This document shows positions 1-16,206 of a stretch of 64,000 nt of DNA, one piece after another. Positions within the stretch are counted from its first letter, which is position 1. Each line of letters starts with the position of its first letter. A program made the position numbers and the translations under genes. The notes under the pieces are model-generated. The model did not search any database. It worked only from the letters and a program-made list of their open reading frames with translations, and was not told the origin of the DNA. Origin of the DNA: Pelomyxa schiedti (lineage: Eukaryota; Protista; Evosea); contig JAHLWZ010000810.1 of NCBI GenBank assembly GCA_020536535.1, positions 63,056-127,055 of the forward strand, read 5' to 3'.

Positions 1-3000
1 CCATTTTTCATAAGCATAGATTGCCTAGACTTTTTTAGTAACTAAAAGGGCCCACAAATTACCCCAACCTTAAGATGACAGCGAGTAGTTGTAAAGTATA
101 CTGTATTGTGAGGTTGCAGGCCTCCCGCATATCACTTTCCAGTGGGATGGAGCCTAATCTCTCCTGAAGTTGCCAAACAATTTCAAGCACATGTTCCTTG
201 GGTCTTTTGCATTAACGCTTCAAGTGGAGGAAGTACCTGCCAATACCCTACAAGGAGAATTGCTTCAGAAAAATCCCCTTGATTGGAACGGGTGACTGCA
301 ATGAGGTGTTGAAGAATCTATATTGAAAAAGTTGCAGTAAAGAAAATACAACAGATTGAAAAAAAAATTACCTGGTTTATTGCAGATATGTTCATGGCAT
401 TATATTCCTGAATGGTACCCACCTTTTTCACTTCTTGGGAAAGAAGAGAAAATACAATTTGCACAACATCTGCATTTTGGACAGAAATACAGCCTTCCTC
501 AAGGTCTAACAGAATAGACCTGTGAATACAGTTACCCCAAAGGATAGAATGCAAGAAATCACCTTTTGGATAAATCTTCGGTAAAAGTATCGGTCATATG
601 CTCTACCAGAACATGGTAGATTGGCAGGGTGAAATTATAAGAACCTTGATAAATGTCAGTCTACAAGCATATAAACCATCGAGCACACTTAGTGCTTCAA
701 TGATGAAGTGGTGCCCAAAGTCACTAAGAAATTTCTGTTTTTGGCGAGGAGAAATCCCTTTAAAATACATCCCAATTACTCTCAAGGCACTAGACTTCTG
801 GTCAGTTGTGGTTTTTTAGAATTGCCTTACTGGAGTCTAAGAGATTCCTTTGGCTTCATGAGGAGTGAGTACAGCACATGAACTACCATAAGATCCTCCA
901 GGTGTTGCAAAAACATTTTTGGAGGGTTTGCCACTGTGTGCTGTAGCACAACAAGTACATCCTCAAGTTCATCACACTCCGTAGTTACAGTGAAATAATG
1001 TAGTAGAATAGCAACCTACCGTGTATATGTGTATATTAAATGTGGGTTGTTGAGTACGACCTCTTCTTTGGTTATGTCCTCTTGGGTTAAAAGGGATTTA
1101 AGGATTGTGCAGAGGAGTGAACGTAGGGATTGTATTTCTTCCCTGAGAGAAAGTTGTGTTTTGGTTGTTTGGCAAATGGCAGGGAATAACCTGGATAGAT
1201 CTGCAAAAAGCCAAAGTCGAACTTGAGTTCCCTGTGAGGCTTCCATTGCACTGGGGTTTACTGGCGAAATTGAATAGTAGTATCTCAGTACTTGTAATAC
1301 AGCACCGATACCAAAAATCTTGCGGAAGTACTTACAGTGATATGAGAATCAAATAGACAACAGTAACAAAAACCTGTGGTTGTGCGTAGACTTGCGCTTG
1401 AACTTGAGCCAGATGTAATTGCTGCAAAGAAAATTCAGCAGCTCTCCAGATACCAAAGTTCAGCAGCAAATAGGAATAGGAGTGTCGTTGAAGCTTTTCT
1501 GTGAGTAGATGAAGACAAGTCTTAACTTGCTGCTGCGTACCACCACAACGAGATACAGACTCTACAAGCTCCAGTAGCCCTTCCAGAAACTCTTGGCTAA
1601 AAAATGTTCTTGGGACATTTTCAAGCAAGGAAACACCAAGTATTCGTAGCATGTCAGTACTCTGTGCCTCTATGGATGCAGCCTCAGAAACTTTAAGTGC
1701 TATACCTAATCTACTACTTAGGTTGGTAGTGTGTGTTAGAGTAAGTACCCAAAAGTTTAAGGGCAAGTGATAGACAATGAGGACCATATGCTCCAACAGT
1801 ATCTGGATGAAAAAGTGGGAGTAAAACCTATCAGAAAATGAGTCTAAGAAAAAACATTGGAAATAACCTTCACTCCTGCAGCTGAATGTAAACTATAAAC
1901 CAAATGCTCACCAAACACACATTCAGAACCCTCCTGCAGTGTAGCTCTTGTTTTAAGGTGAGGTTTTTTTCTTTGAGCCTGCCAAAAAACTTTGGCTGTT
2001 TTCCCGTCAGGGGAGACTTCTTCAGTGACATTATAGCAATGCCTACCTATGCACGCCTAAGGAAGGGATGAGAGTCTGTACGTGGTAGTGGTGCCACACA
2101 TAGGGAGAGAAACAAAACAGGACAATCAAATTGCTGGTACCAGTAAGACCACTGGATGGAAGTCAATTTATGAACAAGTAAAGTTAGGTGTACCTTAGGG
2201 AAGAGTTACTTATACAGAAGTCAGGCCCTTTTTTGTAAAGAGAAGAAACAAGATGAGGAGCCACAACTCCCTGTAGCATCGCAACAGTAGAGAGCTTGCC
2301 AACCAAGGACATGTTGCCTTGGGGTTGGAAAACTCCATTGACAAATTCACCACCATGACCAAGGCCATGGAATCGAAACTTTAAGGAAATTAGGTATAAA
2401 ACTGTGACAGGCAACTCAAACCTGCTCACCGGCTGAGGGAAATTTATGTGCTGTGCTATAGACAAGATCACCATTGATAAAAAACTGAAGCTCAGCACTG
2501 AAGAAGTTGGACCAGTTTGGTTGTGAATGGCAAAGGGTGATATGGTACCACCTACAACATGTGGAAGTAGAGAAAAAAAGGGAGGTGGGCCTAACATTTT
2601 CTCTTGAAAGGGAAAAGGGCATGCCACAATGTTGTTTGTATTTGCCCTGAAGCAAAGATTATCTGGTGTCATAAAAAGCTCTACCCCTGAGTTATTTGGT
2701 GCCAAAAAACTACTTGATTTAGTACGGTTCAATGGACAAGAAAAAACCATACCAAATGAGGCGTGGAGACAATGATTGGAACTGGTCAACCCAGACCCAT
2801 ACTGAGAATGCGTAGGATTGAAGTATATCCACTGGCCCACACTCAATATCAATGCCCTTATTTTTGCTATGTCAGAAAACCAGAGGCACAACAGGGAACA
2901 ACTGAGTTGTCTCCAGTGAGTAAAAAGAACCTCTCTGGATCCCCTCGTTGAGCCATTTGTATCATAGTGTCAAGTAAATTTGCTCTCTGTTGCAGTGGTA

Positions 3001-3786
3001 GACTTGGGAGGGAGATTCAATTACGAGGTTGTATGGCATATAACAGACCTGGGGGGGTCTGTGCTGTGGTTGACCGGGGAACAAAGCATTTTTAGAAAGA
3101 TTTTCACTTCATAAGCAGCAAAGTGATGAGAGCCAACAATACATATTAATTCCAAAATTTGGTCTATGGGACTAAAATTAGAATACATCATCCCTATTGT
3201 GTGTGTACCAAAAATGTGATAATCACAAACTCGAGCTAAAGAAATGACCAACTTCCTAGTCCAACCAACCTCACAACAAAGTGGCACACAAAAGGGAGTA
3301 GCCCTCAAGAAAGTAAGCATTCCTTCCAAGATACATGCCTCAATCCCAAACATAAGTGAAGGGGAAGAAAGAAAAAAGAAAAACCTGGTCATCAGCACCC
3401 AGTGAAGCGAAAGTGGCACCAAACAAATGTGATATCATCCAAGCCACTCTCAGCACCCTGCCCACAACAGTCCCTCTTTCTATGCCAGGTTTCTCGACGT
3501 CACTCGCAGCAGAGTCCCGTGCCTCTTCGTTTTCGTTTTGGTTTCTGTATTCATCTTCGTCCTCATCCTCCTCCTCCTCCTCCTCACCGTGGTCTTTGCC
3601 GTCGCTACGGCCGCTTTCGGCCCCATAATGCAAATCCAAGCTAAAGTCCATGTCACTTAAGAACGAGGAGGGCAGAGGTTGGTGTGCATTGACATCCTCC
3701 CCACACGACGCAGTAGTGGCCGTCACACTGCCCACAACACGTCTAACCAGGTCCAAAAGTGGTGAGGGTCTGTCCGGCGTATCCAT
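1..3786 (-). CDS. Neurobeachin/LvsC-like (BEACH family) protein, 5' part; runs off the window start
   Basis: ATG at 3786 (MDTPDRPSPLL) with an acidic N-terminus. Exon peptides resemble neurobeachin N-terminal regions: LELICIVGSHHFAAYEVKIFL, a ConA/LamG-like segment at 2184-2891 and the DUF4704-like LLLNFGIWRAAEFSLQQLHL. The BEACH domain itself is not in the window. Confidence 0.7.
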
Positions 3787-8300: not shown

Positions 8301-11300
8301 CATTGATTCCCTCTGACCAGCGTTCACCTCTGAAAACAGTGCCTGCTTTTTCACCTCTCATGGAAGTGACTCCTGCAAACTACTTCCAGGTTAGAAAGAA
8401 AAAGGAAGGCCACATTCAAAGAGATGAAGATATTTCACAGGATTTTGCGTTTATGGAGCGTGACGAAATGATGCCGAACTTCCAAAAAAACAAAGCACTT
8501 GTGGAGCCCTATATTAAAACTCTTTTTCTCCCTGATCAAACTAAAGTGTTCGTTTCATTTCTCCTTTTGGTTTAATATTAACAAATAAAAATGTAGACGT
8601 GAGCAGGCTCCTTTTTCTGTTCTCAATGGCAGCATCTCAGGCGTTCTTGCCTTCACCAGTGTTTTAGTTTCCTACACACAAATGCACCAGCAAAAGCATA
8701 ATGATTTACGCCTCTCCAACTCTGAGTTCGATGTACTCTCCACATTGTTGTTGATGTGCCTAAGTGTTTCGACCAACAGCTCTGATTTCAGGTTACTAAT
8801 GAATGGGCCTACTATGTTTGACTTGGAAATTCTTATTTACGCAGGGCCCCTGCGCACCTTGTTGGGATTGTTACAGCTTTCTATCACAAAGTTGATTCTG
8901 CACAAGAATGTTTGGCAGTGTGTTCCTAATCACAGTGGCAGCAGTCATTAACTTGTTTCTAGTACCGACTTGGGAATGCCCCAATTTGGAAATCTGAAGA
9001 ATTTTGGGATTTCTATTTTGCTTGTACTGGGTGAGTTCTGCTGTTGTTGGCTAACGAGCTTAACAGATAAAGTCCATGATAGCCGGAGTACACTTGATGT
9101 GACATATAACAATCACATAAACGATTGGAACACTTTTTCCTCAACAACACAGCTCTTAATATCCCAAAAAGAGGAAGATGTGATAATGCACACATTGGGG
9201 TCTCTAAGTATCATAAATGTCTTTTCTCCTAGCATTATTTGATTTGTTAATAGTATTTCTGATGCTGTCCCTGGGAGTAGACGCCACTACAACAAAGTCG
9301 TTTGTCAACAAAGTTGTTGATCAGTGCTCTCTTCAATCTGACAAGCACGATCAAATGCTTGTTCTCATCAAGAATTTGTATTTCCTCCAACATCAATTGA
9401 TCTTTAACATTACGTAAGAGCCAAAGCTCATGAAGAATCCATAACACAGCTGCAAGCCATTAAATCCAAGGTTCCATTATAATGCGTTTAAAAAAAAAAC
9501 TGTTAACATTATGAAGATGAAAAAATTTGATGCTCCCCCACCAGGGAAATCCAAAGATGATTCCTCAAAATTACCTATTAAACAACCTCCTTTAATGCCA
9601 CCACCCACTTCAATCCCTGATAAAGAAGGAATGGGGTTAGGTGTGATTGGTCCAGAGAAAAAAGACGGGTTTAATATTACAACCCTACAAGGTAGATATC
9701 CATCACCCATGGCATAGTCTCACCTTTTGTAGGCGGAATTGGCCCAATCTCCTGCACATCCATGCACGGACCTATACTTCTTAGTGGGAGCACACTTGGT
9801 CCTGTGAGTTTGTGGGATACAGAGTCCCTACAGTTTATAAGCAAATTAACTGGACATACTGCTGAGGTACTAACAATGAAGAGAGCACTAACTCATTGAT
9901 TTTAGGTTAGTTCTGTACACTTCGGGTCCAACATTGTAAGCTCTTCATATGATAGCACCCTTAGGGTATCTCTTATTATGTGAAACTCATTTTTTTATGT
10001 TGTTATTTTAGGTGTGGGATCCAAGCAACCATAAATGTATTACAGAACTTAAGGGTCACACAGGCCCAATTTACTCTTCCCTGTTGCATCGTAGTTCTGC
10101 GATTATAAGGTATGCCATTATCACCTGTCAACTGGAAACAACGACCGTGTTAGTGGTGGAGCAGATAGACTAGTTCGTCTGTGGGATACTCGAGTGGCAA
10201 ATTCAGTGAGCTCTCTTATTGGTCACAGAGGTCCGATTAGAACTCTCACTGATTCCACGCTCGATGCTCCTTCCTCAATAATTGTATCAGCTGGTGAAGA
10301 TAATATCATCAAGGTTGTGGTGAAGGGTCTTGCCTTTATAAACTCAAAACCAGGTCTGGGATCTCAAAAAAATGGACTGCCTGTATACACTTGAGGGACA
10401 CACAAATTTTATAACGCAAGTTCTTTTTGATTCTAAGACGATCATCAGTGCCAGTTACGATTGTACACTGAAGGTAGTTTCTCCAAAATCTTTTTATGGT
10501 ACTGACATCATTGGGGTTACTAGTGTTGGGACATGAAAGACTCTGGAAGATGTACTCGTAGTTTAGTGGGTCACCAAGGAAGTGTTAACTGCTTTGCTAT
10601 TGACAAATCATCATCTAAAATTGTTTCTGGATCTGGTGACAACATGATTCGAGTGTGGGATCATGACTCAGCAAATTGTTGTGCTGTACTACGAGGACAC
10701 TCTGCTGAAGTAACATGTCTGGCTTGTGTTGATGGATGGTATGCCTACCCATGAATACTTGTCAAGGGATGTCTCACAATGTTTAGGGTAGTATCCGGAA
10801 GTGAAGATAAGACTGTGAGAATGTGGACACTCAATGGTGATTGTGTAAAATTGCTTAGAGGTCATGATGATTCAGTATGTGACATAACAACTAACTATCT
10901 ATATTTTTTGTACTCTTTACATATTTGTTTCATGCCAACAGCTCACAAGTATATACGCACAAAGTAAACTACGCATCATTTCTACTTCCCGAGATTCCAC
11001 TGCCAGAATTTGGTCCATAACACCTCCCCAGCCTCCGACGACCACAGGCTCTACTTTTGTTCTTGGGCACAGGAAATATGCTGCATCAGTGGATAACAGT
11101 CATTTCTCCCAATTAAAGAGTTCCAGTCCTGTCAATACTAAGTACAAGATCAAACAAAGTGAATGGTAGTAACCCATTCTCAGGATGTCAATTCCATTGA
11201 AGCCTGCTGCTCCAGCACCAACTCCCACTAAATCGGGGTTGCCAATGATGCTTCATCATAGGACGCTCAGTGGTGACTCGACAAAGTCCTCTGGCCCGTC

Positions 11301-12075
11301 ACCCTTCCACACAACACCCATAATCATCACCCCATCACAATCTGTACAAGCACCCACGCCATCAGTCACAATATCCACTGCCGACTCCACTCCTTCACCT
11401 ACTCCATCTCCAACTTCCTCACCAACACTCCCTCCAATCCCTCCACCGTCACAATTGCCATCTGGGTCCCAATTCTTATCCCCATCAGCAGCTCACATTA
11501 TGCCCCCAGCAGCAGCTCCATCATTGGACTCTCCCCAGCAACAGCATCAGCAGCATCAACAGCAGTTACTACCCCCACTTCCCCTTTTACCCTCATCAAC
11601 CTCAGGTACTAACCTCACAACCACAAATGCAGTAACCCCTCCTCCTTCAACACAGACACTCACACCCCCCACATCCCTCTCAGGATCCTCATCATTTTTC
11701 TCCAAATTCACGAAAAAGAAGCAACCGGCCCCACCAAGCACCCCATCGCATACAACGACAGCACACACACCCACATATACACACACACCACCCGATTCCA
11801 CCCCAATTAAACAGCAACCACAGCACACACCCAGTGAATCACAACCATTACAACCAGAATCCACCATTACAGTTGTTCCCAATGTACAACAACAGATTCC
11901 GCATTCAGACTCACCAATCACAACAACAGCTACACCCCCAATACAACATTCGCACCGGAGACAGCAACCGCAGCACCCACTGCCACCAACTCCACAGAGA
12001 ACTGATTCAACTAGTCCCACCCCAGCAGATAAGGATAACAACAGAGTACCAAGCCCGTCACCCAACAAACCATAA
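5352..12075 (+). CDS. DENN-domain (putative Rab GEF) protein with coiled coil and C-terminal WD40 repeats (SCD1-like architecture); Pro/Ser-rich N-terminus and probable Pro/Thr/Gln-rich C-terminal tail
   Basis: DENN motifs RLVDYFLVI, FFTFVVTEVDGSRYFGSAL, CLCILSRYAFYSTFKQFL and AVLEEKRILFLSS; WD40 repeats such as LVGHQGSVNCFAID...SGSGDNMIRVWD and VSGSEDKTVRMW. The unspliced frame stops at 11169. A 42-nt GT-AG intron (11142-11183) joins it in frame to ORF 11185-12075, which could alternatively be a separate gene. Confidence 0.75.
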
Positions 12076-12315
12076 ACGAATTGCTAAAAAAAAAAAAAAA
12101 AAGAAAATCAAAAGCAATCACAAAGACCCAAGTGCTCACTGCTCCAAAATACCAGGAAGCTACAACGCTTCTTGCGGGAATGTCTCAACTCATTACACCT
12201 CCCACTGTCCGGAAAGCAGCTGGAGGACAGAAGTCCTGAATACTAACACCGAGAAGAGACTACTACCCCTCAGCTCGTGCGGTTCGCATAAGTCGTAGTT
12301 CGGCCGTTAGTTGGA

Positions 12316-14594
12316 ATGGCGGCACAGAAGGAGGGAAGGGTGTTACTGTACGGACCGTGCTGTGTGGGGAAAACGGCTCTAATGGAGTCGTATGTGCCGG
12401 TCTTGTTGCGACTCTGCTCGGCACTCCTTTTTTTTTTTTTCTTTTTACCAACGCACTTTGAAATGCAGGTATTGCAGTGGTCGATGGCGTCCGGAGTCTT
12501 ACGACGGTTCTTTGGAAGTTTCGGTGAGTAGCCCAAAAATTGTTTACATCCTTGCCAATCATGTAGTAGTACAAAAAAATGGTGGTTGTTGATTCTGTTC
12601 CTGTGATACTGGAGTTCTTGGACACGTGTGTACCAGGGACCAGTAGCATTTTTTCTTTAACGACAAAAACAAAACAAATTAAAATAAAACAAAACAAACA
12701 AACAAACAAAAAAAAGTGCTGGGCAGGAAGAATATCCTTCCATGCTATCACAGATGTATGTAACCACTTCTAGAAGATTTTTTTTTACATTGTGTGCCAC
12801 TACCAGTTTCCGGAGTGCAAATGTGGTCCTTTTATGCTTCTCTCTTGATAACCGAAGTACTTTTGATGACGCTTTGAACAGATTCTTCCCTGAAATTCGT
12901 CAAGAATCGCAGGTAGTTAAAAATAAATGGTTTCTTTACCGAACCTCTTTACCATTGGTTTGTGGGTTTTTAGGGGGTAGTCATTCTTGCTGGTCTCAGA
13001 CTAGACCTTATTAATACAGAGCACCCTTCAACCAGTGACGTATGTACTTTCTTGTGCATTGACAACCGTTTAAATATTGTTCTTACTTTGCGTGCAGCCG
13101 CCTTCAGGGACCACAGTTTCATTTCAGGAGGGTATTTCTGCAGCTATAAAAAATGCAATGTATGGTTACTTTCAATGCAGGTGCAGTGTACTATGCTATT
13201 GTTCCTTTTACCAAAACTTGTTTAGCGCCAAGCAAGCAGTTGGCCTGGACAACCTTTTTGTGGAAGTATGCCGAGCTGGGATGTTTGGCGACAAGAAGTC
13301 TATGTCCACAAAAAAACCAGGACTCTTCAGTTTTTTTTCAAAAAGATCGCATAACAAGCCAGTATCCACACAAAAGTGAACCTCTACTACTTCTATGTTC
13401 TTTTATCTCATTTTTGAAGTTCCCACCATACCGTGGATATCTCTCCAGGAACTGTTGTCCAAACTTCACTGAACGTCATCCCCAATAACATTTGGCTCTG
13501 TACGTAAGACACAAAAAGTTTTTTCCCCAACCCCACAAATCAGTTGTCATGGAATACCTTGACTTCCCGGCACTGATCCGGGTCTCTCGAACATGCAAGC
13601 TGTTTTATCACCTTGCCAAGACCGAACCAATGTGGACAAATGCATTTCGTGGGGTTTGGAATTACCCTGGCTTTGTTAAAGGATTGAGTTGGAAAAACCC
13701 CTCGTTCACATGGGACCCTGAAAGGTGTTTCCATGACTATGTTCCCCCTCCACCAAGACGCCGGCGTGTATGTATCACATATATGAGTTGGCATTCCTCA
13801 AATTGCGCAGTCCGGTTCAGATGACATTGTCTGCTTTGGTCCAAATACGAGCATCTTGCTGTCTAATAACAAGGTTTGCCCTATGAAAGACCTAGCAGTC
13901 GGGAATCAAGTTCTTGCTTTCTATCCCACTTACAATGACTGTGGTTATTTTTCTCTCGCTGTTGTGCACTGCATTTGGAAGTGTGTGTTTCGCGATTCAT
14001 ACAAAATCTCAGACCTATAGATGTCCAGTGCATCGGGCTATTCCAATGATTGTTATTCACAGCAACTCGACCGACTCAGCAACCGAGTCAGTACTTGAAA
14101 TCACGCCCGACCACCCAATTCTACAGCTGAATGACCACTGTCAACAGCACCCAGTGATTACGCAAATAACCAACAATGAACACAACAAGTGGTGCCTCCC
14201 TACCGCCCTCGGTGAACCACAAATGATTGATGTGGAGTATGTCTACAACATAGCACTGCAGTCACTCCCACCGCGGCAACACACACTCAGCATAATTCCG
14301 GCATCAGATTCCATCAACAGCGGCACCAGCACAAACGATACAGCTTCCAGTGGTTCCAGCCCCCACTGCCCTGATAATGATTGCGATGGTGTTGATTACG
14401 ACCCTAACACACAGAGACGTGGTGGAGGAGGTGTGGTGGTTGGTAGGTGGTGCTGTTGCACTCTTGGGATGAGTGTCCCTGGCTACCCTGATGACTGGTG
14501 GGGTACTGACCGTGTCATATCCTGGCTGGAATCCAGGCCTGACTTCCCAAATGTACAATCACACCCACCACTCCACCACTCCAAAAAGTGCTAG
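12316..14594 (+). CDS. Atypical Rho-like small GTPase - F-box - Hint (Vint-type) domain fusion protein
   Basis: GTPase motifs GPCCVGKT, LDTAGQEEY, VLLCFSLD, ILAGLRLDL and YFQCSAK. Introns 13376-13419, 13500-13543, 13768-13810 and 13981-14020 keep the frame through an F-box (LNVIPNNIWLFVMEYLDFPALIRVSRTCKLFYHLA) and a Hint domain (CFGPNTSILLSNNKVCPMKDLAVGNQVL; LEITPDHPIL; YVYNIAL; VVVGRWCCCTLG...WWGTDRVISWL). Confidence 0.85.
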
Positions 14595-14762
14595 TAATGA
14601 GGCTGCTCTGCTCAAGCCAACAAAAGTTTTTCCTCCTCTATTCACTCCGCATTCCTTGAAAATTTTCCGAAGATGAACAAAATTTTGTTCGTTCGTCTCA
14701 GAGCCACGGCTTTGAGAGAACAAAGGGGCTGTAAGGAAAAAAAACACAAACAAATGATACAT

Positions 14763-16206
14763 TTAACTGCCACGCAAGGGGCAGCTTGAGGTGGGTGATA
14801 AAGGGGAGATCTGTGGCTCAGGTCTCGTTGGGTTGGTGGTTGTGTCGGTGGAGGCGGAAACACGGCGCTCGCTTTTTTGTTTCTTCATTTGTGCGGGGTG
14901 CTCGCGAATGAATACTGTTGTGTTGGGTGGAATGTCCTCTTGAATCCACGAGTTTGCTCCAATACTCACATTGTCACCAATGATTATTGGGCCTAGTGTT
15001 AATGGTGAATTTTATGGAAAGTAAAATTAAGTACTTGTAGTTTGGGGGGACGTTATGCTATCATACCTAACAGTTTTGTTCCAGTTCCTATAACTACATG
15101 GTTTCCAACAGTAGGGTGCCTTTTATAGGGCCCTTTTTTGAGTGTCTTGGTGGATTCGTCAATCTCGAAGTGGAGGGCGCCGAGAGTCACGTTTTGGTAT
15201 AACCGGCACCAACTTCCAATTTCTTTAATTGACAACAAATTGAGAAACACTTATTGGCGAGGGCTTGATTACCTGCAGTTTCTCCTATCACAGTGCCCAC
15301 CCCGTGATCGATGAAGAAATACTACAGTTTTTAAGTGATTGATTTCCCATTAGCATGGACATCACACCTCACCAATTTTCGCTCCTGGATGCAGATCGAT
15401 CGCTGTTAGTCTGTGGACCATTTCACATAATTCTCTTGGATAGACAAGTGCCTTCACCAAGTAAAATTCATGTGCTATCCTTTGTATCATCACTGCAGCA
15501 AGGCCTGGAATGTCTAAGTTCCTCACAGGAAAATAGAGTGACACACTTGGATAACAGCGAATGATTTCCGCAATTGAAGCTGCTGCGGGATCACCCTGGT
15601 ATGCTGCTAAAACTACATGATCATTATAAATACAATGAACGAAGTACAGTTGAGACTCTTACCATCTTTCTTCAGTAGTTCCCGTATCTCCCCCAGCTTC
15701 AAAAATACAACGACTACCATTCCCACAACACTTAGCACATCCTGATGATACGGGAAAATCCCATCAAACATTACTCCTGCGAGGTGATTCAACTTCTCTC
15801 GCAATAGAGGCTTGTTTCCCAGTACAGCGAGTTCACAGCAGTTATAAAACCGCGGCCACATTATCTGTTAATATGAGGAACTTAGCTAGCACCCCAAGTG
15901 AATGACTACTACCTCCATAAGCAAATCCAGCTCCGTGAAGGTTATTCTCAATGGGAAGGTTACATACCTTCCCATGTTGGAGCTTGCCGTTACCCTAGAT
16001 GACTGCATCTCTCTTAGGACAGGATCCCTCCCGTCGCCTTGCTGTACTATTCGCGCTGGCGAAACAGACGCGGCAGAAGCCACCAAGGACGTGAACCGCT
16101 GGTCTGCAGAATCCAGCTCATAACTACGCTGCAGCGACGCAATCACATCGCTAGACACAATTGTGTCCAGGTGAGGAGCAAGTGGGACCGGCCAAACGTA
16201 TGACAT
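14763..16206 (-). CDS. cysE: Serine O-acetyltransferase (SAT/CysE)
   Basis: Exon peptides [62 protein letters not shown] and [17 protein letters not shown] form the SAT left-handed beta-helix signature. The first ATG is at 16206. Confidence 0.93.

Follow-up and report, generated by a model that had tools for sequence, protein, structure and literature searches.

What does a HINT domain do at the end of a protein that begins with a small GTPase and an F-box? The question is raised by a gene of Pelomyxa schiedti at positions 12316-14594 on the forward strand of a 64,000-nucleotide stretch of contig JAHLWZ010000810.1 (the whole stretch analysed, hereafter the window). Its 12 exons give a spliced translation of 558 amino acids, in which a Rho/Ras-family GTPase is followed by an F-box, a linker and a Vint-type HINT domain. 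HINT domains are known from inteins, from the cholesterol-transferring half of Hedgehog, from bacterial intein-like (BIL) domains and from the little-studied Vint proteins; to our knowledge, next to nothing has been established about the cargo and nucleophile that Vint domains use in nature. With a probability of roughly 0.6, sequence and structural modelling point to an autoprocessing role, in which the Vint-type domain of a cytosolic GTPase-F-box protein would cut itself off.

A Vint-type HINT domain and its predicted chemistry

The C-terminal 240 residues, from Cys319 to the end, form a HINT domain. In the spliced protein the Pfam Vint model (PF14623) matches with E 3e-6 and 27.6 bits, barely above the cut-off of 27, and among paralogs and relatives it scores 31-53 bits, covering model positions 1-141 of 166 in one of them, P0021. 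The separate exons gave sub-threshold matches only (Hint, E 0.002; Vint, E 0.004), and the Pfam Hint model (PF01079) stays at 17-22 bits, under its cut-off of 29.7. When a family profile (A1) built from an alignment of 18 members was compared with the sequences of the PDB, E was 7e-14 for the Vint domain of Tetrahymena (8R2C) and about 3e-6 for Drosophila Hedgehog. An AlphaFold2 model calculated on the same alignment has a mean predicted local distance difference test score (pLDDT) of 78.6 and a predicted template modelling score (pTM) of 0.74; the core exceeds 90, and poor confidence is confined to low-complexity insertions. Foldseek ranked 8R2C first for this model (E 1.2e-6), and VIA-align superimposes the two with Z 18.8 and a root-mean-square deviation of 2.7 Å over 152 of 169 residues (model residues 8-245). 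That alignment takes in the tail that follows the CCTLG motif and reaches chain residue 154, while those with BIL2, Hedgehog and inteins have Z of about 10-11 and stop near CCTLG, at model residue ~207. Matches in the AlphaFold DB were Hint and Vint domain proteins, U-box and VWFA-Vint proteins, and Hedgehogs; feature look-alikes in the ESM Atlas were Vint clusters at low recognition, which we took as a lead only. Profiles and model together assign the C-terminal domain to the HINT fold proper, and within it to the Vint subtype. An initial annotation, made from the sequence alone, had noted a Vint-like end and had proposed comparing a predicted structure with the Hedgehog and Vint folds; the Pfam scores agree with a Vint assignment, and the comparison favours it clearly, with a Z of 18.8 for 8R2C against 10.6-10.7 for Hedgehog.

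The domain is laid out as follows, in window coordinates.

13811-13980 (+): exon with SGSDDIV, the predicted scissile bond Val318-Cys319 and the first β-strands as far as CIWK
13832-13834 (+): Cys1 (Cys319), codon TGC, in C-F-G-P-N-T
14103-14117 (+): block B, T-P-D-H-P (Thr396, Asp398, His399, Pro400), within LEITPDHPIL
14238-14249 (+): block-F-like Y-V-Y-N, with Asn444 at 14247-14249 (model strand 127-141)
14265-14432 (+): Ser/Thr/Pro/Asn/Gly-rich low-complexity insertion that separates block F from the last strands
14451-14468 (+): C-C-C-T-L-G (Cys512-Cys514, Thr515, Leu516, Gly517), last strands of the HINT core
14469-14555 (+): conserved C-terminal tail MSVPGYPDDWWGTDRVISWLESRPDFPNV, including WWGTDRVISWL, which overlaps structurally with the C-terminal region of 8R2C

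The motifs listed in the initial annotation (RRRR, CFGPNT, LEITPDHPIL, YVYN and WWGTDRVISWL) all lie where it had placed them. Exon 13811-13980 carries a Pfam Hint match at exon residues 7-38 and is modelled with pLDDT >90. In block B, the Thr codon (14103-14105) and the His codon (14112-14114) align with TPKH of 8R2C and TPAH of Hedgehog. The low-complexity insertion differs in length among paralogs, has pLDDT <50 at model residues 150-190 and falls into gapped columns of A1. The three Cys codons of W-CCC-TLG (14451-14459) begin a motif that takes the position of Hedgehog S-C-Y-A and Vint C-I-C-L-G, and that aligns with ECICLG of 8R2C. As for the tail, it is modelled with pLDDT 88-94 and is the top-scoring stretch in most family matches. 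A profile of the tail only (A2) found no significant match among PDB sequences, and the best hits, TCL1 (E 0.17) and DGK-delta (E 0.64), look like chance. In the model, the tail is the structural counterpart of the Vint C-terminal region.

In established intein and Hedgehog chemistry, Cys1 and the block-B Thr and His are needed for the N-to-S acyl shift. Across a conservation alignment of 22 sequences with 30-56% identity, only 13 columns are invariant, and they include these residues: Cys319, Trp367, Thr396, Asp398, His399, Pro400, Trp425, Asn444, Cys513, Gly517, Pro521, Trp528 and Pro544. Asn444 occupies the place of the intein block-F Asp, and Cys513 matches in position the SCYA motif of Hedgehog and the CxCLG motif of Vint; Cys514, Thr515 and Leu516 are each kept in 21 of the 22. 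Compared with the two nearest paralog loci, the two Hint exons have a ratio of nonsynonymous to synonymous substitution rates (dN/dS) of 0.10-0.27 at dS ~0.9, and the domain is therefore under purifying selection. The invariance of Cys1, Thr and His in 22 of 22 sequences, together with this selection, supports a catalytically intact Vint domain, which is how the residues of the acyl shift had looked to the initial annotation.

The mechanism that we propose starts with the thiol of Cys319 which, aided by Thr396 and His399 of the TPDH motif, would attack the carbonyl of Val318, so that an N-to-S acyl shift yields a thioester. Resolution of the thioester by a nucleophile would then split the protein into a GTPase-F-box fragment of ~35 kDa with the C terminus ...RRRRSGSDDIV and a ~27-kDa Vint fragment whose first residue is Cys and whose N-terminal peptide is CFGPNTSILLSNNK. 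The tail after CCTLG would pack against the HINT core, as its counterpart does in the Vint structure from Tetrahymena, and is the likeliest element to choose the nucleophile or to gate or time the reaction. By default, the nucleophile may be water or a small thiol, and the outcome would be plain regulated autoproteolysis of an SCF-type adaptor. An intein-type C-terminal junction (His-Asn/Gln/Asp followed by Cys/Ser/Thr and a C-extein) was not found in the protein, and because this junction is missing no splicing should follow. The initial annotation had expected none, having seen no His-Asn followed by Cys, Ser or Thr, and the actual C terminus, ...HHSKKC, is in keeping with this. The Asn of FPNV in the tail is replaced by Tyr, Arg, Ala or Thr in relatives, and the next residue is Val.

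Autocleavage at Val318-Cys319 is likely from these sequence features, yet some points weigh against it. The residue at position -1 is a β-branched Val here and a Pro in some algal relatives, and Val or Pro at this position slows or blocks N-terminal cleavage in inteins. The conserved Cys, Thr and His could also have a role that does not involve cleavage. Regulated cleavage by a Vint domain has reportedly been described in a 2024 paper on 8R2C.

The closest known system is the Vint domain itself. The crystal structure of Tetrahymena thermophila Vint (8R2C; PF14623) and the domain described here share the fold, including the C-terminal region, and have in common Cys1, a TPxH block, W-x-x-P and a C-x-C-L-G-like end. 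They differ in that the tail of the Pelomyxa protein has no detectable sequence similarity to that of 8R2C and in that the domain contains long disordered insertions. Both kinds of protein are intracellular, and Vint, too, occurs in fusions with a ubiquitin-ligase module, in its case the U-box. Burglin 2008 defined the VWA-Vwaint-Vint arrangement, described U-box-VWA-Vint proteins, and proposed that Vint proteins are probably processed inside the cell, some of them carrying a U-box (PMC2362128). The cargo in that arrangement consists of VWA and Vwaint, whereas here it is a small GTPase, with or without Kelch, and an F-box; Pfam detects no VWA or Vwaint domain in any member of the present subfamily.

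Gene model, transcripts and the GTPase-F-box half

The gene model was assembled by hand and then corrected by RNA joints. The RNA evidence consists of Logan contigs from four single-cell RNA-seq runs of one sample, placed on 12200-14800.

12316-12389, 12469-12523, 12570-12625, 12717-12755 (+): exons 1-4
12807-12912, 12974-13039, 13098-13180, 13226-13375 (+): exons 5-8
13420-13499, 13544-13767, 13811-13980, 14021-14594 (+): exons 9-12
13544-13767 (+): among these, the exon that encodes the F-box and, after it, the linker with PPPPRRRR at its end (Pfam and direct reading)
13768-13810 (+): 43-nt GT..AG intron that separates RRRR from SGSDDIV (RNA contigs of runs X1, X2 and X3)
13981-14020 (+): 40-nt GT..AG intron within the HINT domain, after CIWK (RNA contigs of X1, X2 and X3)

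The spliced frame runs uninterrupted from ATG to TAG (stop codon 14592-14594), and the window is eukaryotic in character, its introns being short and bounded by GT..AG. RNA contigs confirm 8 of the 11 splice joints, including 13499/13544, 13767/13811 and 13980/14021, and a single contig of 1057 nt runs from the F-box exon through the linker and Vint exons and past the stop codon. The other three joints (12625/12717, 12755/12807 and 13375/13420) are based on GT..AG ends, the reading frame and homology to paralogs, and the last two of them are also present in the public model. The initial annotation concerned 13741-14594; its content stands, but this stretch is not a single frame, being crossed by the two introns listed above. 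In the paralog locus L001, the tblastn alignment breaks after CIWK, which places the intra-domain intron at the same position as in this gene.

The public protein KAH3757035.1 (P0001, "hypothetical protein Pelo_11166"), retrieved by exhaustive HMMER search, has 488 amino acids and is 100% identical to our translation from residue 71. Its start Met is encoded at 12742, and the first 70 residues, which come from the P-loop and switch I exons, are left out. The 5' exons absent from it (12316-12389, 12469-12523 and 12570-12625) are supported by RNA, and code for the P-loop, with the motif GPCCVGKT, for the switch I region and for the strand that precedes DTAGQEEY. The true length of the protein is 558 rather than 488 amino acids.

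In one contig of run X2, the linker that follows the F-box is shortened by an in-frame deletion of 18 nt (window 13695-13714), and contigs of X2 and X3 diverge from the window sequence at 14119-14200; both differences could reflect an allele, a paralog or an assembly chimera. Upstream of the gene, an open frame of 296 amino acids (11185-12075, +) is of low complexity and extremely rich in Pro, Ser, Thr and Gln.

The only Pfam domains in P0001 are Ras, F-box and Vint. The F-box-like model scores 27.6 bits with the exon alone and 31.7 bits in P0001 (cut-off 24.3), and the F-box model 26.7 bits in P0001 (cut-off 20.5). For a paralog G domain, the best sequence matches in the PDB were an Entamoeba Rho-like GTPase, RHO1 and Rac1; R-Ras followed closely. 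Since the N terminus of the protein is the first strand of the G domain and the P-loop, there is no signal peptide, and we read the GTPase-F-box-Vint protein as cytosolic on this sequence basis. The G domain is internal and the C terminus lacks a CAAX box, as the initial annotation had said. Across the family, a Cys within the last four residues is common (SKKC, RLCL, STCM, KACI, ATCC; here 14577-14591), and none of these Cys-containing C termini forms a canonical CAAX box. RhoBTB proteins likewise join a Rho GTPase to a cullin-adaptor domain, a BTB of the Cul3 type, and have no CAAX box. The likeness to the present protein lies in a Rho-family G domain and a cullin-RING adaptor in one CAAX-less polypeptide; the differences are an F-box of the Cul1 type instead of the BTB, and the HINT domain that comes after it.

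Immediately after the G domain, the protein carries the basic-hydrophobic motif TKKPGLFSFFSKRSHN (13308-13355), and the corresponding pattern KKxG(F/L)FSFFSK is kept in nearly all paralogs that bear a GTPase. The motif KKPGLFSFFSKR falls within residues 1-318, apart from the RRRR patch before the predicted scissile bond. From its position and conservation, the segment directly behind the G domain may be a membrane-binding or interaction element that stands in place of the hypervariable region of Rho proteins, and it appears a better candidate for membrane contact than the arginines.

Other roles for the conserved residues

Instead of cutting, the Vint domain might remain uncleaved in vivo and serve as a protein- or ligand-binding module, that is, as the substrate receptor of an SCF adaptor. 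Its place C-terminal to the F-box is where other F-box proteins carry WD40 repeats, leucine-rich repeats or Kelch, the tail is more conserved than the catalytic blocks, and the Val or Pro at -1 is, as noted above, unfavourable for cleavage of the intein type. We nevertheless regard this role as rather unlikely. Cys1, Thr and His are invariant in 22 sequences that have only ~13 invariant columns, which is hard to explain unless they take part in chemistry at the scissile bond, and the Kelch-bearing paralogs already own a receptor domain.

Given a thioester, its resolution by water is the simplest outcome of the autoprocessing that we favour, but an amine or hydroxyl group of another protein could take the place of water. 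The GTPase-F-box half would then be ligated covalently and without ATP, in the manner of BIL2 from the BUBL locus of Tetrahymena (6Y75/6TMM). The HINT fold is shared with BIL2 at Z 10.4-11.2, the upper value making it the second-best structural match. BIL2 is a eukaryotic cytosolic HINT domain whose thioester is used for non-splicing chemistry, and it joins ubl4 through an isopeptide bond either to ubl5 or to a Ras GTPase (PMC8616854). Together with the U-box-Vint proteins of Burglin, this conjugation makes a link between HINT domains and the ubiquitin pathway plausible, and the conserved tail of the Pelomyxa domain could position a partner. Several differences make such a ligation distinctly unlikely. 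BIL2 carries an Asn at its C terminus (its structure was solved with the construct C1A-N143A) and sits between two ubiquitin-like domains, whereas the present protein has neither a C-terminal junction nor a ubiquitin-like cargo; what would be transferred is a ~35-kDa protein of two domains rather than a ubiquitin-like domain with a flexible Gly-Gly-like tail. No partner is known, and the similarity to BIL2 is no greater than that to Hedgehog or inteins.

The initial annotation had favoured a different outcome, in which a sterol or another lipid is attached to Val318 and, together with RRRR, anchors the GTPase-F-box half in place of CAAX prenylation. Besides the intact Cys1 and TxxH and the missing CAAX box, this idea can draw on the conserved tail, which lies where Hedgehog carries its sterol-recognition region, and on PPPPRRRR (PPPP at 13744-13755, RRRR at 13756-13767), which is kept in the three closest paralogs. 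The C-terminal part of Hedgehog, Hh-C (1AT0/6TYY), shares the HINT fold, with Cys1 and TxxH aligned, and as in the Pelomyxa protein it is C-terminal in its precursor, lacks a splicing junction and has a conserved extension past the HINT core. Unlike Hedgehog, the protein described here is not secreted, its Pfam Hint score is under the cut-off, and the residue D46 of Hedgehog appears not to be kept in the alignment. Its extension is short and predicted to have a Vint-like fold, without a sequence match among solved proteins, and does not resemble the sterol-recognition region. The Asp that activates cholesterol in Hedgehog (D46, D303) falls, in a hidden Markov model alignment to 6TYY with uncertain strand alignment, on the Lys of CIWKC; across the family the column holds Lys, Arg, Gly, Cys or Ser, and the alignment is insecure there. 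Pelomyxa is anaerobic and the synthesis of sterols depends on oxygen, which also counts against a sterol adduct. The Pelomyxa and Mastigamoeba genome papers contain nothing on sterols, Hint or F-box proteins.

The arginines themselves do not behave as the anchor would demand. Cleavage had been expected to expose a polybasic C terminus; the predicted end of the fragment is instead ...SGSDDIV, with RRRR 7 residues inside, two Asp after it, and a net charge of about +1 over the last 12 residues including the new carboxylate. Apart from this gene, four Lys or Arg in the 12 residues before Cys1 are found only in the two nearest paralogs (after correction of their models) and in one other, and the family median for positions -12 to -1 is 1, so that the patch is not conserved in the family and the proposal of a polybasic substitute for prenylation is poorly supported. 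The better conserved KKxGxFSFFSK directly after the G domain also speaks against the anchor. In family members the arginines precede Ser and Asp/Glu (RRRRSGSDD, RRSSSDD, RHRSDSDE, RRWRRDEE, RRSSSP), and the R-R-x-S/S-S-D-D pattern of the paralogs appears closer to kinase sites than to a membrane patch. The region has more the look of a linker prone to phosphorylation than of the Lys/Arg-only patches of K-Ras and Rac1, and on present sequences the patch is local to one paralog clade and lies outside the conserved mechanism. The adduct idea thereby only loses its sequence-based argument; we consider the lipid anchor very improbable.

A splicing intein or BIL domain, or a pseudogene or annotation artefact, can practically be dismissed: the HINT fold would suit an intein or BIL, but a terminal His-Asn-(Cys/Ser/Thr) is absent and only ~12 non-conserved residues follow the tail, while a pseudogene is contradicted by the intact frame, the spliced RNA and a dN/dS well below 1.

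A Vint subfamily expanded in Pelomyxa

An exhaustive HMMER search of 1.84 billion representatives with the single sequence as query found only 26 proteins at E <0.001, and a word-index search brought in further paralogs. The combination of F-box and Vint was found only in Pelomyxa, with ~17 proteins in P. schiedti and one in Pelomyxa sp. JSP; a word-index search with the latter gave no match outside Pelomyxa. Vint is C-terminal to the F-box in all of these members, whose architectures are GTPase-F-box-Vint (about ten), Rac-Kelch-F-box-Vint, Kelch-F-box-Vint and F-box-Vint. P. schiedti also has Vint in contexts that lack an F-box, namely ankyrin-Vint and one uncharacterised region. The same Vint subtype, recognised by the signature CFGP, CIW, TPDHP, WCLP, YN, CCTLG and WGT..W..FPNV, occurs behind other N termini in cryptophytes (Rhodomonas), a haptophyte (Pavlovales) and metagenome contigs.

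In the Rac-Kelch-F-box-Vint proteins P0028, P0036 and P0025, whose genes lie elsewhere in this genome on other contigs, the Rho/Rac motifs are near-canonical (GDGAVGKTCL, WDTAGQEDYDRLRPLSYP), whereas the G domain is diverged in paralogs that lack Kelch, this gene included. Because of this difference, the sequences suggest that the longer, Kelch-containing architecture is ancestral.

The public models of two paralogs are faulty. The closest paralog, P0006 (KAH3756351.1, 844 amino acids, annotated as "Ras family"), is fused to a downstream DUF4403 gene and seems to miss the end of the Hint domain; by tblastn, its locus L002 (JAHLWZ010000826.1, ~2715-3695) encodes a full Vint domain that keeps CCCTLG and the tail, so the model is wrong. 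The model of P0034 (Pelo_4551) drops ~29 residues, including PPPPRRRR. At its locus L001 (JAHLWZ010000370.1, 2840-2980), the DNA reads ...EYVPPPPRRRR, followed by a 43-nt intron and then SSSDDIVCFGPN, an arrangement identical to that of the gene described here.

Public pre-computed Pfam hits already label the protein as Ras, F-box and Vint, and a literature search found no paper on the GTPase-F-box-Vint architecture. The domain type is thus known, curated in Pfam and structurally solved; what is new is a distinct, lineage-expanded subfamily with a new cargo. It adds the F-box to a recurrent association of Vint with ubiquitin-ligase modules, for which the U-box had been noted earlier. With Vint fused to two well-understood modules in an expressed family, it also offers a tractable test case for cytosolic Vint function, in which the domain may do no more than cut, may do so on a signal, or may attach something. 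A more ambitious interpretation, which we consider unlikely, sees in Vint a switch or ligase that is gated by a ligand and acts on a cullin-RING adaptor. The conserved CCTLG...WGT...FPNV tail would read a signal and thereby trigger the thioester at Val318-Cys319, and the GTPase-(Kelch-)F-box half would be released, or moved covalently to a lipid or protein nucleophile. If this were true, the ~17 Pelomyxa paralogs would represent a cytosolic, ATP-independent, Hedgehog-like modification that steers the targeting of a ubiquitin ligase.

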